A stretch of DNA of 63,841 bases, counting the filler, from Ministeria vibrans ATCC 50519 (Eukaryota; Protista; Filasterea), in the NCBI GenBank assembly GCA_943704425.1. It is 9 parts of 9 records of this genome, joined end to end, with 100 filler letters (N's around TTAATTAATTAA, not from the genome) between each part and the next. Parts side by side here need not be neighbours in the genome. Positions count along the whole stretch, not along the records: positions 37,035 to 40,468 come from CALSCP010002371.1; 8 more parts are not named here. One strand, given 5' to 3'. The notes under the pieces are model-generated. The model saw nothing but the letters and a program-made list of their open reading frames with translations, did not search any database and was not told where the DNA came from. Of the stretch, positions 3,338 through 41,493 are shown piece after piece (the first letter of the stretch is position 1; every line of letters begins with the position of its first letter). Position numbers and translations under genes: made by a program.

Positions 3338-4684
3338 TCAAGGGGCTGCTGACTTGGTCGAATCGATAGCAAGCATGTGCATGCACGCGTGTTCGTCGGG
3401 GGCAGGAAAGCAAGCAGCTCCATTTGTATCACAATATTTTATGTAAGACAAGCAACACTTCTTCACTGTCTCAAAGAGGCATCGTCCAAAAGTGGCGCGG
3501 AAGGAACACACCTGCCGCAGAATCGGGTACAGCCGTGGCCGAGCGAGCCCCACGCAAGTGCTCGAGCGACGTGCGTTGAGATCCCAGGAGCGTTGCTGAG
3601 GGAGGGCAGACTGGAGGCGCAGCGGGCACTCGGGTTGTTGAGCGTGCTTTTCGGATACCTCTTTGTGGCTTGCGCGAGGCAGCATGACTGGCCCGTTGTT
3701 GTTGTTGCTGCTGCTGCTGCATTTTTGGCATGGCTACCACTTTTTCTTTTGTGCCGGTGCATTGCTGTGCGTCGGTCGTCATGGCTGCAGTGACCGCGCT
3801 TGGTCTTGTCGCCACTCTCATTGCTGCTCTCGTTGCTGGTCTTGTCGCCGTTCTAGTAGTGGTGGTAGAGGGTGGTGGCGGCGGCGGTGGTGGTGGTGGT
3901 GATGGTGATGGTGTTATTGGTGGTGGAAGAGGTGCGGGTGTCGTAGGCTTGCGTGGTTTGTGCGCTTTTGCAGAGTGAAGCAGCAGTCCTCGTTGCGTTG
4001 CAAAGTGTCGCACTACCACATTCGAATAAAAAGAGATAAACAAAACAAAACGAAACACATCAAATCAGCGGTGGTCGGCGTCCGCATGCATGATGATGTC
4101 GTTATTGGCGTATAATATCTTAAGATATTCAATTTGGGCGTCGTACTGCAAGCGGGAAAGCAACAGGAGAAGACGCGTTGATTTTCGGGACTGTTTTGCG
4201 CCATTTCCATCGCGCTGCGCTCAAACGACGGTGACGAGGATGCCATTGACTGCGGCCCTGTCTCTGGGCCTGGCTGGGTGTTGCTGCTTGGCGTTGGGGT
4301 TGGAGAGGAGGTGCATGAGACAGTGGTGAGTGGCACAATGGGCGGCAGAAGTGTCGGCGAGAGCGCGTCGCTTCGAGACGGTGATCCCGCCGTCGTTGTC
4401 GCATCGTCGTCGTCGTCATTGCCGTCCAGCTGATACATATCACTGCAGCCTGCGGGACCCGCAAGGAGAGAGCCAATGGTGGCGAGTGGAGTGGCGTTGT
4501 CGTGATCGCTTCGAACGTGTTCCAACGCAAAATAGGCCAGTGTGTGCGCGTCCCTCTCCATGCCAACCCTTGTACGCTCGCAATCAACGCATTCTGCTGG
4601 CAGCTGCAAACTTGACTCCATCTCGGGTAGAAGCTCCACGGAGCCAGCTGGCTGGCCCAGAATGTTGTCAATAAACTCGTCCAT
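3338..4684 (-). CDS. Low-complexity protein with a single C2H2 zinc finger
   Basis: Splicing ORF 4013-4684 to ORF 3471-4058 yields FSCCFPACMRHFATQRGLLLHSAKAHK (C-x4-C-x12-H-x4-H). The 3' end is at 3471, or at 3338 via another intron. Confidence 0.55.
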
Positions 4685-37034: not shown

Positions 37035-37822
37035 CACATATAGCCAGTGACGTAGGAAACGGGCAAATAGCGCTTGTCCTCACGACCGATAGTATCGTTG
37101 CAAGAGTCCCTGGCCTGTTGGTCATATTCTCTCAAAAGAGGGCCGAGGTAGCTGAATTGAGTGCTGTGCAGATCGAGCTTTGGTTGTTGCACTTTGAGCT
37201 GGTACAAAGCGTATGTGGTACACGATATAATTTCGTTGTTACCACAACGCAACGAATAAGACTTTTTATCCGCCTCTGAGGATGCGAACACTGTCCATTT
37301 ACATGGCATATTAGCCGATGTCATTTCGCCCATGGGCTCTTGGTAGTGCAGCTCTGAAGCAGCATAACAGCAGTGCACAAAGGTTTTGACTCGATGCACC
37401 GTGCACATAAATCCCGCTGTTTGCATCATTTTTGGAAATTCATCGTAAATCCGAAGCGGACCATCTTCGGTGGCGAACCCGACTTGAGATCCATGGCCAA
37501 CAAAGTGAATGTTGAAGAGTGCTTGTGTACTGATCCTGAGTTTCAGATCACTAGATCGGCGGTCGGAAGCGGAAGCCAACTTAGCCAAGACCTTGACTGC
37601 TTCCTCAATCGTCTGTTTGGTGACCTGTTGGGTTTTATCGTAGGCAACCATGAAACCGCCACTCTCACGATAGAGATTTTCAAGAACCCTTGCGTCCGTT
37701 CGGAGGTCAGCCTTGGCGTCGTCCACGACAATCAAAATGAAATACTGCCTTTCAGCATTGCGTAAAATGCAAATGCGTGAAGTCGTTGATCGCTTCTCGC
37801 AAACGCCCAACAAGCTACCCAT
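37035..37822 (-). CDS. Divergent clan CD (caspase/metacaspase/legumain-fold) cysteine peptidase; intronless, 3'-truncated
   Basis: FNIHFVGHGS (His-Gly), KTFVHCCYAAS (cf. DxCySG), TVFASSEADKKSYS, SCTTYAL in canonical order; N-terminal MGSLLG. Confidence 0.7.
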
Positions 37823-38444
37823 CGTTTTGAAAATGGGAAAAGAAAGAAAAAAATTAATAAAACAATAAACACCGCTCCCTCGCCTCGTTCCGAGGGGAGG
37901 ACGAGTTACCGAGAGTGGTAGTGGCGACAAGCTCATGTGAAAACAAAGAAAGTTGCACTTGCAAAATTATTACTTTTAACCAAAATGTGCTATATATCCT
38001 TATTTTCTTTTGCTTTTATTTTTTACTAGTTCCCAAGCTGCTGAAGTATCATAGTTAATAATTATTAATTTTATCAATTGAAATATCCCTTCAGCCTATT
38101 TGGGTTGTATTCTTCTTCTTCTTTATCTCTACTTTGTTTGAACCGTTCCGACTTTTCACGTTACTACCACACGATCAAGTTCAACGAGATGCTCCATAAT
38201 TATATAGAATCAATTCTGTATAAGCATGACGTCATGAGAAAAGTGGTATGATCAGTATGATGCAAAGGAGTCAAAAACGCAATCGGTCGAATAAAAAAAT
38301 TTGTGGGTTAGGATAATACAATGAAGCCTGTTGGAAGGGTGTCGAAGACGGCAAAAGGGCCAAAGGTGCTACTTGACCCTATTGGGAAAATTTCAAGAAA
38401 TAAAAAAGCGAAAATTTCGTCGAGTTTTGATATCCTTGGGCGTT

Positions 38445-38503
38445 CCAGCACAGAGATTCAACGTTTCGTGTATTCAATACACTTCTTCAGGACTATGTGA
38501 TGG
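38445..38503 (-). ncRNA. Minimal type I hammerhead ribozyme, copy 1
   Basis: Minus strand: CCAUCACAU AGUC CUGAAGA A GUGUAU UGA AUACAC GAAA CGUU GAAU CUC UGUGCUGG; one mismatch in proximal stem I. Confidence 0.75.
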
Positions 38504-38644
38504 TAGAAAGAGGAAAAAAACTGACGAAATGAGAGGAGAGTGACTTTAAATAGGAAAAGTCTTATGCAATGGAATTATGCACTATTGCGTAAGACTCATT
38601 GCATAATTCCTTTTGCGTAATTCCTATTGCGTAAGAGGCACTTG

Positions 38645-39130
38645 TCACTCGTTGTCAGAGAGAGGTGCGACCTGGGTGTCGGCGTTGTGGCGTAGCAGTT
38701 GTCGGAGGTTGCTGATACGTGACCAGGCGAGACGGACGTGACGTAGGACAGATCGATCAGAGGGCGAGACTTTATGACGTAGACGGGCTAGGGTTAGGAG
38801 TTCCCGCCAGGGTACCTGCTCTGTCACTTGTGTGTGAGGGAGCACAAAGGTGGTTAGACGCTCTGGCGGGGCTCGTGTGTCGTCTTCTGTCGTTTGTCGT
38901 TCGCACTGCTTGCCGAGGTAGAAGTGTCGGTCGGAGTGAGTGACAGATGCAAAACAGCGAGTCGTGAAGGCTGGTGGGTAGCCTCTGGCTCGGAGTCGGT
39001 TGTAGAAGAGCTGGGACGCCGCAGCAAAGTGAGCGACGTCAGTGCTCAGGGTGGCGAAGCGGGTAAGTTCGACTTTGAGGGAGGCGCGGAATACTTCGCG
39101 TCTTTGTGGCTTTGAGTGCCTGCTGAGCAC
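38645..39130 (-). pseudogene. C-terminal (thumb/helical) fragment of Penelope-like reverse transcriptase, with no GIY-YIG domain
   Basis: VELTRFATLSTD..F....QLFYNRLRARGYPP and AWSRISNLRQLL resemble PLE GELxRy..S..RLxxRGYP and AyrRxxNLrxLL motifs; stop follows ~16 aa later. Confidence 0.8.
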
Positions 39131-39403
39131 GTTGTGTTTGTTTGTTTGCTCTTGTGTTTGTTAGTGTGGCGCGTTTTATTACTTTTGTGTGTGACTGTGT
39201 TGTTTTCTTAGTGTTCGTGATTGTTTGTTTTTGATATTATGTGTGTTGTTTTGGTATTTGTTCTTTGGTGTTGCTTGTAGTATCCTCTTGTGTGTTTTTG
39301 TGTTTGATGTGTGTGTTGAGGATCGCGATGTATTCCGAGTGGGCCCCATAAGCTGCTTGAGTATGTGTTAAACGTCTGAATACAATCGTAAAGTTCATGT
39401 CTC

Positions 39404-39458
39404 GGTTAGGGTTAGGGTTAGGGTTAGGGTTAGGGTTAGGGTTAGGGTTAGGGTTAGG
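39404..39458 (+). repeat. Telomeric repeat tract (TTAGGG)8 + TTAGG
   Basis: Direct reading. Confidence 0.97.
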
Positions 39459-39590
39459 ATAATAGAATGAAGCCTGTTGGAAGGGTGTCGAAGACGGCAA
39501 AAGGGCCAAAAGTGCTACTTGACCCTATTGGGAAAATTTCAAAAAATGAGAAAGCGAAAGTTTCGTCGAGTTTTGGTATCCTTGGGCGTT

Positions 39591-39649
39591 CCAGCACAGA
39601 GATTCAACGTTTCGTGTATTCAATACACTTCTTCAGGAATATGTGATGG
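39591..39649 (-). ncRNA. Minimal type I hammerhead ribozyme, copy 2
   Basis: Minus strand: CCAUCACAU AUUC CUGAAGA A GUGUAU UGA AUACAC GAAA CGUU GAAU CUC UGUGCUGG; CUGANGA/GAAA core, perfect stem II, AUUC/GAAU stem I, palindromic AACGUU stem III. Confidence 0.82.
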
Positions 39650-39932
39650 TGGAAAGAGGAAAAAAACTGACGAAATGAGAGGAGAGAGTGAGTTTAAATA
39701 GGAAAAGTCTTATGCAATGGAATTATGCAATATTGCGTAAGACTCATTGCATAATTCCTTTTGCGTAATTCCTATTGCGTAAGAGGCACTTGTCACTCGT
39801 TGTCAGAGAGAGGTGCGACCTGGGTGTCGGCGTTGTGGCGTAGCAGTTGTCGGAGGTTGCTGATACGTGACCAGGCGAGACGGACGTGACGTAGGACAGA
39901 TCGATCAGAGGGCGAGACTTTATGACGTAGAC

Positions 39933-39977
39933 GGGTTAGGGTTAGGGTTAGGGTTAGGGTTAGGGTTAGGGTTAGGG
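39933..39977 (+). repeat. Telomeric repeat tract (TTAGGG)7
   Basis: Direct reading. Confidence 0.97.
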
Positions 39978-40359
39978 TCCTTTGCTTTGTGATGTGACTG
40001 GCGCTGCACTAGACGTAACGTGAATGTGAGTGGCTGCGACTTTGGCGTTTGTTGTGCTCTGCTGACATTGGTGGTATGCTGTCGTGTGAGTGTGAGCTTA
40101 TAACGATGGTTATGTTTGTGGCTTGCGTGTTACTTTCACCTTGGGAGAGGTGGTGTGGTGTTGGCTGTCATGAGTAGACTGGCGTTGCGGTGGAATGAGA
40201 GAAATTTGTTTGTCTTGACTTATAGACCCTCTTGTAAGAGTGAGAGAGAAATGGGAGTAGAGAGTTAGAGAGGAGAGGGCGCGATGTATCCTGAGTGGGC
40301 CTCATAAGCTGCTTGAGTATGTGTTAAACGTCTGAATACAATCGTAAAGTTCATGTCTC

Positions 40360-40384
40360 GGTTAGGGTTAGGGTTAGGGTTAGG
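40360..40384 (+). repeat. Telomeric repeat tract (TTAGGG)3 + TTAGG
   Basis: Direct reading. Confidence 0.95.
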
Positions 40385-41493
40385 ATAATAGAATGAAGCC
40401 TGTTGGAAGGGTGTCGAAGACGGCAAAAGGGCCAAAAGTGCTACTTGACCCTATTGGGAAAATTTCAANNNNNNNNNNNNNNNNNNNNNNNNNNNNNNNN
40501 NNNNNNNNNNNNTTAATTAATTAANNNNNNNNNNNNNNNNNNNNNNNNNNNNNNNNNNNNNNNNNNNNGAGAGAGAGAGAGAGAGAGAGAGAGAGGAGCA
40601 GCAGATCGCAGAGACGGCATACTTCCGGCATACCCCGTTGCCGGTGACTAGCAGCGTCACGGGCTGCGTTGGGACCACCCCGGTGAAGATGTACGTCAAG
40701 GATGCGCCGGAGACGACACTACAATGCACAGGAGACCCGGGGGCGGGGCAGGGAAGGTGAGCGGGAACGATGTATTGTCTTGTGGGAAGTCTTGCGGTTC
40801 GTCTACCCTCCAACAGACTTGGTCTGCGATCCAGATGACGTCGTGACACACACCGGATCAAGAGCCAAGCTCATGCTGACGCTGGCAAAGACGCTTATGA
40901 GCGCGAGGAGCATGGCTTAATCTCTTATCAAAATTGACTGAAAAATTACTGAATAATTATTTTTTTCCACGTGAAAAGAACGTGAAAAGGACGTGAAAAA
41001 TCATTTGGAAATCGATTGGAAATCGTTCTGGGGCTTCACCCATGAGACAAACACCACCCCGGCGTACTGTAGCTACTACCGCCGCTTCCAGTCTCCCGTC
41101 ACTCCCGTTGGCGCTCACTTGAAACCGCGGAGCAATTTTCTCTTTTCCTTTCTCTCTTCTTTATCTCCTTTATCTCCCCTTTATCAATTCTCATGTGATC
41201 CTCTCCCGGGAGACCCTTGGGCGGCCGCCCAGCTCGCCTGCCTGCTCCAACGGCCCAACGCTAATTTACGCTATGTGCAGGCAGTGCAGCATGTGAATAT
41301 AACATGTTCTGCTGAGGCACATCTATGGATCTCTTCGTGGACGGCTAGAAACATATGTTGCCTATGTTTTGCAGGTTGTACAACAATTGATGTTATTTTT
41401 TGTGTTTTAAGCCGAGATGAGAGATCTCTCCAGATTTCAATTCTGCACCCTTTTTCACTATAGTACTCGCGATTTTTCGACTCCACTGCCATT

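Follow-up and report, generated by a model that had tools for sequence, protein, structure and literature searches.

A probable minimal hammerhead of the dimer type in the 3' module of a telomere-attaching PLE from Ministeria vibrans

The locus and its element

The window, i.e., the whole stretch of Ministeria vibrans DNA that was analysed (63,841 nucleotides, filler included), contains a piece, positions 37035-40468, in which a last gene is followed by a mosaic of telomere arrays and copies of one retroelement. The features of the mosaic are the following:

38305-39100, minus strand: element copy 1, 796 nt, 5'-truncated at 39100, with a C-terminal fragment of the RT ORF, 3' UTR, hammerhead and tail
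38645-39100, minus strand: C-terminal 151 codons of the RT ORF plus stop (stop codon 38645-38647), 96% identical to residues 515-665 of the protein P0001
38787-38800, minus strand: telomere-complement motif internal to the RT ORF, with the sequence CCTAACCCTAGCCC in copy 1 and CCTAACCCTAAC in the master copy
38445-38503, minus strand: hammerhead motif of copy 1, core identical to copy 2, predicted cut between 38460 and 38459
38314-38459, minus strand: tail of copy 1 (three-copy alignment)
38306-38313, plus strand: remnant of a telomere array (repeat family D1)
39459-39932, minus strand: element copy 2, 474 nt, 5'-truncated and telomere-capped
39591-39649, minus strand: hammerhead motif of copy 2, master form with inner stem I intact (sequence, descriptor, CM, MFE)
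39459-39605, minus strand: 147-nt tail of copy 2, from the predicted cut to the C-rich telomere-complement repeat (three-copy alignment, repeat families D3 and D4)
39404-39458, plus strand: array of the telomere G strand with 9.2 GGTTAG units, adjoining the 3' end of copy 2 (Tandem Repeats Finder, repeat family D1)
39933-39978 and 40360-40384, plus strand: further GGTTAG arrays (Tandem Repeats Finder)
40385-40468, minus strand: tail of copy 3, ended by the piece boundary (three-copy alignment)

Reading along the plus strand, every GGTTAG array is succeeded by the 3' end of one and the same element in antisense orientation. Because the arrays each precede antisense 3' ends, the plus strand is the telomere G strand and the copies were added tail-first. 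On the sense strand of the element the array at 39404-39458 reads CCCTAA. The joining of this CCCTAA end to GGTTAG, together with the 5' truncation, is the footprint of reverse transcription primed by a telomeric overhang on the C-rich repeat. Between the stop of the RT ORF and the hammerhead there are about 140 nt, and the predicted cut is 147 nt upstream of the C-rich repeat (39605 down to 39459); a preliminary description of this DNA had placed the cut about 145 nt upstream of the CCCUAA end, in good agreement with the measured distance.

The full element was found on L001, a 3628-nt contig from a Logan assembly, which encodes the 665-aa protein P0001. The ORF fragment at 38648-39100 is 96% identical to the P0001 C-terminus. 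The order on L001 is ORF1 (385 aa), RT ORF (665 aa), hammerhead, tail, CTAACCCTAAC and ORF1 again. Its first and last 30 nt (1-30 and 3599-3628) are identical, which identifies the unit as tandem or circular; its period is about 3.6 kb. The same circular-unitig signature, with 30 identical nt at the ends, is seen in a 3626-nt contig of run X7. The assembly of the full element as a circular unitig with this period is what the tandem copies claimed earlier would lead one to expect. Circular unitigs of about 3.6 kb were observed in two independent runs, at least one of them with spliced RNA, and may represent tandem genomic units or circular RNA or DNA. A BLAST comparison of copy 1 with L001 gave 98% identity along 565 nt and 94% along 265 nt; it has a boundary at 39100 which is also marked by contig pieces and loose ends in the sequencing runs.

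Copy 2 is 5'-truncated exactly at the internal CCTAACCC motif of the element, which is intact in L001 at 3366-3377, and there runs into 7.7 telomere repeats. Such a two-unit CCCTAA motif inside the RT ORF, 45-151 nt before the stop, is found in at least five lineages of 23-30% protein identity (window, 38787-38800, minus strand; L001, 3366-3377; L004, 3037-3048; L040, 4154; L080, 2204; L064, 2769). Across lineages it is read in differing frames, i.e., as LTLT, NPNP or PNP; therefore, the constraint seems to be on DNA or RNA and not on protein. This suggests a built-in seed for telomere re-capping.

RVT_1 was matched in nine out of ten members of the P0001 family. The sequence ADKN (A146, D147, K148 and N149 of P0001) is invariant in ten aligned members, L150 and G151 are almost so, and the family also has the motifs YxDD and FLD. 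The third residue of the DKG-type motif is known to differ among PLE clades (PMC8557442). A PDB profile search with the element RT yielded generic RT and TERT matches only, and Pfam returned nothing for the two ORF fragments in the piece. A GIY-YIG domain was matched in none of the ten family members, and the ORF of the family ends about 150 aa beyond the RT core. The nearest clusters in the protein atlas consist mainly of proteins from rotifers that have the same two Pfam families, which may be a lead towards Athena-like elements. The PLE host proposed in the preliminary description is supported by the near-identity of the fragment with P0001 and by the RVT_1 matches and ADKN of the P0001 relatives. 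The hammerhead bears out the retroelement call.

The stretch is present in twenty runs from nine studies, some of them 'algae' and 'seawater' metagenomes. Four runs were examined, as contigs. In runs X7 and X17 a contig lacks 37815-37909, and the ends of this gap are GT..AG on the minus strand; the DNA run X1 is contiguous there, and X7 and X17 therefore contain spliced RNA. The skipped stretch is the 95-nt intron of the last gene before the telomeric mosaic (37035-37936, minus strand). The product of this gene has no Pfam match and no detectable homologues; an HG and CC pattern in it might loosely recall caspase-like folds. The contigs of X7 (38320-39100) and X17 (38405-38945) span the predicted cut unbroken, where it must be kept in mind that contigs cannot display RNA ends. 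At position 38493 all four runs have an A, i.e., the form of copy 2, which consequently is taken as the master form.

The hammerhead motif

Both strands of the piece 37035-40468 were read. From 39649 to 39591 the minus strand is CCAUCACA-U-AUUC-CUGAAGA-A-GUGUAU-UGA-AUACAC-GAA-ACGU-U/GAAU-CUC-UGUGCUGG, the slash indicating the predicted cut. The parts of copy 2, all on the minus strand, are:

39649-39642 with UGUGCUGG at 39598-39591: stem I extension
39640-39637 (AUUC) with 39605-39602 (GAAU): stem I
39636-39630: core C3-A9 (CUGAAGA)
39629: bulged A
39628-39623 with 39619-39614: stem II
39613-39611: G12-A14 (GAA)
39610-39607: A15.1-CG-U16.1 (A15.1 at 39610, U16.1 at 39607)
39606: U17, predicted cut between 39606 and 39605

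The hammerhead core is complete. All invariant positions are present, in canonical order between helices I, II and III. Stem I has 4 bp (AUUC/GAAU), followed by a small internal loop and an extension in which 7 out of 8 bp are formed. Stem II has 6 bp, with G10.1-C11.1 as the first pair and one unpaired A ahead of it. The A15.1-U16.1 pair is present and H17 is U, not G. Helix III has no hairpin; it lacks the canonical monomer form, and its ACGU palindrome fits the dimeric form. The MFE fold of the 59-nt motif is exactly the hammerhead structure (-12.3 kcal/mol, 55% of the ensemble), with a fold z-score of -1.45 which by itself is not significant. Strand reading and MFE fold agree with the sequence, structure and coordinates given in the preliminary description.

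The motif of copy 1 differs from that of copy 2 solely at 38493 (C on the plus strand), which changes AUUC to AGUC and breaks one inner stem I pair. This is the single stem I mismatch already reported for this copy.

The motif was searched for with a descriptor which demanded a stem I of at least 4 bp, CUGANGA, a bulge of 0-1 nt, a stem II of at least 4 bp, GAAA, a palindromic insert, U, H and stem I. Copy 2 is its sole match in the piece, and 6000 dinucleotide-preserving shuffles of the piece gave no match on either strand. Within the piece, copy 2 was the top match of a CM from five distant relatives (16.1 bits, E 0.0036). Copy 1 scored 10.7 bits, and a spurious match of 11.7 bits in the piece falls between the scores of the two copies. 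The model search which had been proposed as a check succeeded with the family CM and the descriptor and failed with Rfam: on the piece there was no match even at E<=10 and no hammerhead model at gathering score. Likely this is because the motif lacks the helix III hairpin expected by the Rfam hammerhead models. On nine relatives at E<=1 Rfam gave only a 21-bit match to Hammerhead_HH9, the gathering score of which is 52. The ribozyme annotation gained here is well supported and is missed by Rfam-based pipelines.

The duplex of the ACGU helix III has about -3 kcal/mol compared with -6 to -10 kcal/mol for the 6-nt palindromes of relatives; these energies were computed for the helix III duplex alone, the double-hammerhead topology not being nested. 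RNAcofold of two copies swapped only stem II between the strands and was uninformative on helix III.

Conservation in related elements

Relatives were taken from metagenome, Logan and NCBI assemblies, eight of them by protein look-up (23-30% identity) and eighty more loci by a metagenome scan. The scan set comprised L001 and 93 related loci, i.e., 94 loci with 362 kb. In it the descriptor located 52 motifs, every one of them on the RT-sense strand and none in antisense. The CM, seeded with five relatives only and with the window excluded, identified 66 hammerheads in the related loci, again all on the sense strand and 0 antisense. The descriptor scan demanded the palindrome by design, the CM set did not; the CM, which was without modelled helix III pairs, recovered palindromes that are missing from its seed.

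In 47 distinct sequences the nine modelled pairs of stems I and II are paired in 96.8% of the cells compared with 31-43% when the partners are slid; these counts lean towards the hammerhead fold, as the alignment (A4) was fitted to the model structure. Double-sided changes were counted in 206 cells and affect all nine modelled pairs. The covariation score is 1.07, as opposed to about 0.1 for slid partners and 0.20 for shuffled sequences. G10.1-C11.1 is nearly invariant (GC in 40 of 41). H17 is C in 26, U in 13 and A in 8 of the 47 sequences, G in none. Beyond the 4-bp stem I the flanks pair with -4.96 kcal/mol versus -3.04 kcal/mol when shuffled (p = 2e-8), and the stem I extension described earlier is borne out in that the flanks of the relatives pair better than shuffled ones. 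The preliminary description had named a lack of conservation or covariation of core and stems across genomic copies, together with a lack of cleavage, as what would refute its claim; conservation and covariation are both present in the relatives. The complete core, the first rank of copy 2 with a CM from distant relatives and the covariation of stems I and II all speak for the proposed hammerhead identity.

Helix III is a perfect palindrome in 43 of the 47 distinct sequences and comes in eight different sequences. Palindromes are ACUAGU, ACGCGU, ACCGGU, ACGU, AUGCAU, ACAUGU and ACAAUUGU; the descriptor scan added AUGGCCAU and AGCGCGCU. In most relatives the palindrome has 6 nt compared with 4 nt (ACGU) in the element of the window. 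These palindromes support the dimer reading and fit the dimer idea of the preliminary description.

The position of the motif is conserved as well. Of 50 loci in which the RT ORF is complete and followed by at least 450 nt, 34 contain the motif, which starts 102-525 nt past the stop. The cut is followed, at a distance of 68-235 nt, by a short C-rich telomeric repeat in at least 11 relatives, two of which (L038 and L080) run on into long CCCTAA arrays. In the comparative set the distance from the ribozyme down to the telomere-complement priming site is short and fixed. Several metagenome contigs have two hammerheads spaced one unit apart. Taken together, relatives of only 23-30% protein identity share the position, strand, catalytic core and paired stems of the hammerhead.

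Possible functions, known systems and further repeats

From these comparisons it appears quite probable that the locus carries a genuine, selectively maintained minimal type I hammerhead in the 3' module of an EN-deficient, telomere-attaching PLE of the Athena/Coprina kind. EN-deficient telomeric PLEs are the closest mobile relatives of telomerase. Because of this kinship the 3' module bears on the origin of RNA-templated telomere addition.

The class of hammerhead-bearing elements is not new because PLE hammerheads, those of telomeric EN-deficient elements included, have been published (PMC4209133, PMC8557442, PMC6431247); the preliminary description had correctly stated that PLEs carry minimal type I hammerheads which fold as dimers. 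The existing picture of PLE hammerheads is unchanged in kind. Dimeric action was proposed for PLE hammerheads in which a bulged base precedes G10.1, the G10.1-C11.1 pair is conserved and helix III is palindromic, and the published minimal ones cleave poorly in vitro (PMC4209133). The motif shares with the minimal hammerheads of metazoan PLEs the type I architecture, a short stem I and a long stem II, the unpaired base between A9 and G10.1, the conserved G10.1-C11.1 pair, a palindromic helix III implying a dimer, and the location in a terminal repeat or 3' region (PMC4209133). In contrast to those, which are from EN-containing elements of animal hosts, it belongs to an EN-deficient telomeric element from a marine eukaryote and metagenomes. 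For telomeric PLEs of fungi and protists, hammerheads with a large helix III and activity as monomers have been described (PMC4209133), whereas here a dimer-type palindrome is found. A whole clade of telomere-attaching, EN-free PLEs has a palindromic helix III of the dimer type and departs from the published generalisation that the telomeric PLEs of fungi and protists have monomer-active hammerheads.

Other known systems are similar in part. Rotifer Terminons, as summarised in PMC6431247 and PMC8557442, have an EN-deficient PLE RT and a 3' hammerhead followed by a short reverse-complement telomeric repeat, and they occur as 5'-truncated, telomere-capped copies in head-to-tail chains at chromosome ends. 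Their C-rich repeat comes immediately past the hammerhead and is ACACCC or TCACCC, whereas here it is CCCTAA and 147 nt away (68-235 nt in the relatives); our element differs also by its compact unit of 3.6 kb. In Poseidon PAc from Anolis (Frangieh et al. 2024, PMC11167929) the hammerhead is likewise located about 100 nt upstream of the RT start and inserted copies include the uncut hammerhead, i.e., uncut RNA is the substrate. Unlike our element, it has a GIY-YIG endonuclease, inserts inside chromosomes and uses an AC-rich stem-loop as the RT start instead of a telomere-complement repeat. Newt satellite 2 (Forster et al. 1988, cited in PMC4209133) and the retrozymes (PMC7229834) also have a weak helix III with a palindromic loop and need two motifs from tandem repeats for cleavage; they are short non-coding tandem units forming small circular RNAs, unlike an autonomous retroelement of 3.6 kb.

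How might the motif act? As helix III is merely a 4-nt palindrome (ACGU), a lone motif cannot close it. Two motifs would pair via the palindrome to form an active double hammerhead. The partners might be successive units in a read-through transcript of a tandem array, or two separate RNAs. Because the ACGU duplex is weak, a chaperone or the RT may be needed. The cut would fall after GUU, at a distance of 147 nt from the C-rich repeat downstream. The priming 3' end cannot be a product of cleavage, since the priming site lies downstream of the cut. RNA left uncut at the hammerhead presumably gave rise to the copies in the window; therefore, cleavage most likely trims multimeric or read-through precursors, and such trimming could set the 5' end at the hammerhead of the upstream unit.

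As the chief alternative, the fold could be kept as a structural landmark and not as a nuclease; the RT would recognise it and begin copying at the downstream C-rich repeat, and cleavage would be irrelevant or incidental. The uncut origin of the window copies and the RNA-derived contigs spanning the predicted cut agree with this proposal. For the rotifer Terminons it has been proposed that the fold exposes the adjacent C-rich repeat (PMC6431247). In the canonical PLE Poseidon PAc catalytic mutants of the hammerhead leave in vitro insertion unchanged, RT starts about 90 nt past the cut, and no RNA-seq ends were detected at the cut (PMC11167929). On the other hand, every catalytic nucleotide is retained across the clade. 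G is absent from H17 in all 47 distinct sequences, when about a quarter would be expected by chance, and the palindrome, needed only for an active double hammerhead, has been kept with eight different sequences. The strict retention of catalytic bases and palindrome, which a fold serving solely for protein binding would not require, disfavours a purely structural role, and we consider such a role unlikely.

A more elaborate version of the cleaving double hammerhead would involve a circle. The hammerheads of two successive units would excise a unit-length RNA, with the 147-nt tail and CCCTAA first; this would be ligated to a circle, a telomere overhang would prime on the internal C-rich repeat, and the RT would copy round the circle. 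Telomerase, too, primes on an internal template. The CCCTAA motif in the RT ORF would then be the telomere seed at which truncated copies are re-capped. If true, this would account for the circular 3.6-kb unitigs in RNA-containing runs and for head-to-tail chains, and also for a hammerhead which is upstream of the priming site and not at the priming site. At present we regard it as speculative and rather improbable.

[quoted passage not shown] However, with this pairing A15.1 would face a C instead of U16.1, the five bases ahead of any stem I partner would stay unpaired, and the AUUC/GAAU stem I would be lost. An equivalent hairpin is absent from the relatives; in all of them a short palindrome is directly followed by H17 and stem I. 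We have rejected this very improbable structure because of the core geometry and its absence from all relatives. A chance match or decayed, functionless relic, to which the lack of Rfam matches, the z-score and the modest CM scores in the window with a spurious match between the two copies might point, is refuted by the comparative data, i.e., strong covariation, the sense to antisense ratio of 66:0 and the conserved position after the RT stop, as well as by the absence of matches in 6000 shuffles, and its probability is practically negligible.

Two more repeats were observed in the piece. Upstream of the hammerhead the 3' UTR of the element has about 3.7 copies of a 14-nt repeat (TATTGCGTAATTCC-like; 38582-38634 and 39731-39782), and these partly form an imperfect inverted repeat. 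An 80-nt module is present at 39324-39403 and 40280-40359 with 96% identity between the copies. It has no hammerhead, no Rfam match and no match in the related loci. On the plus strand GGTTAG arrays always come after the module, and the sequences ahead of it are unrelated. In run X1 its summed contig depth is about 11,000, compared with about 44 for the single-copy gene nearby, and a large number of different contigs diverge within it.
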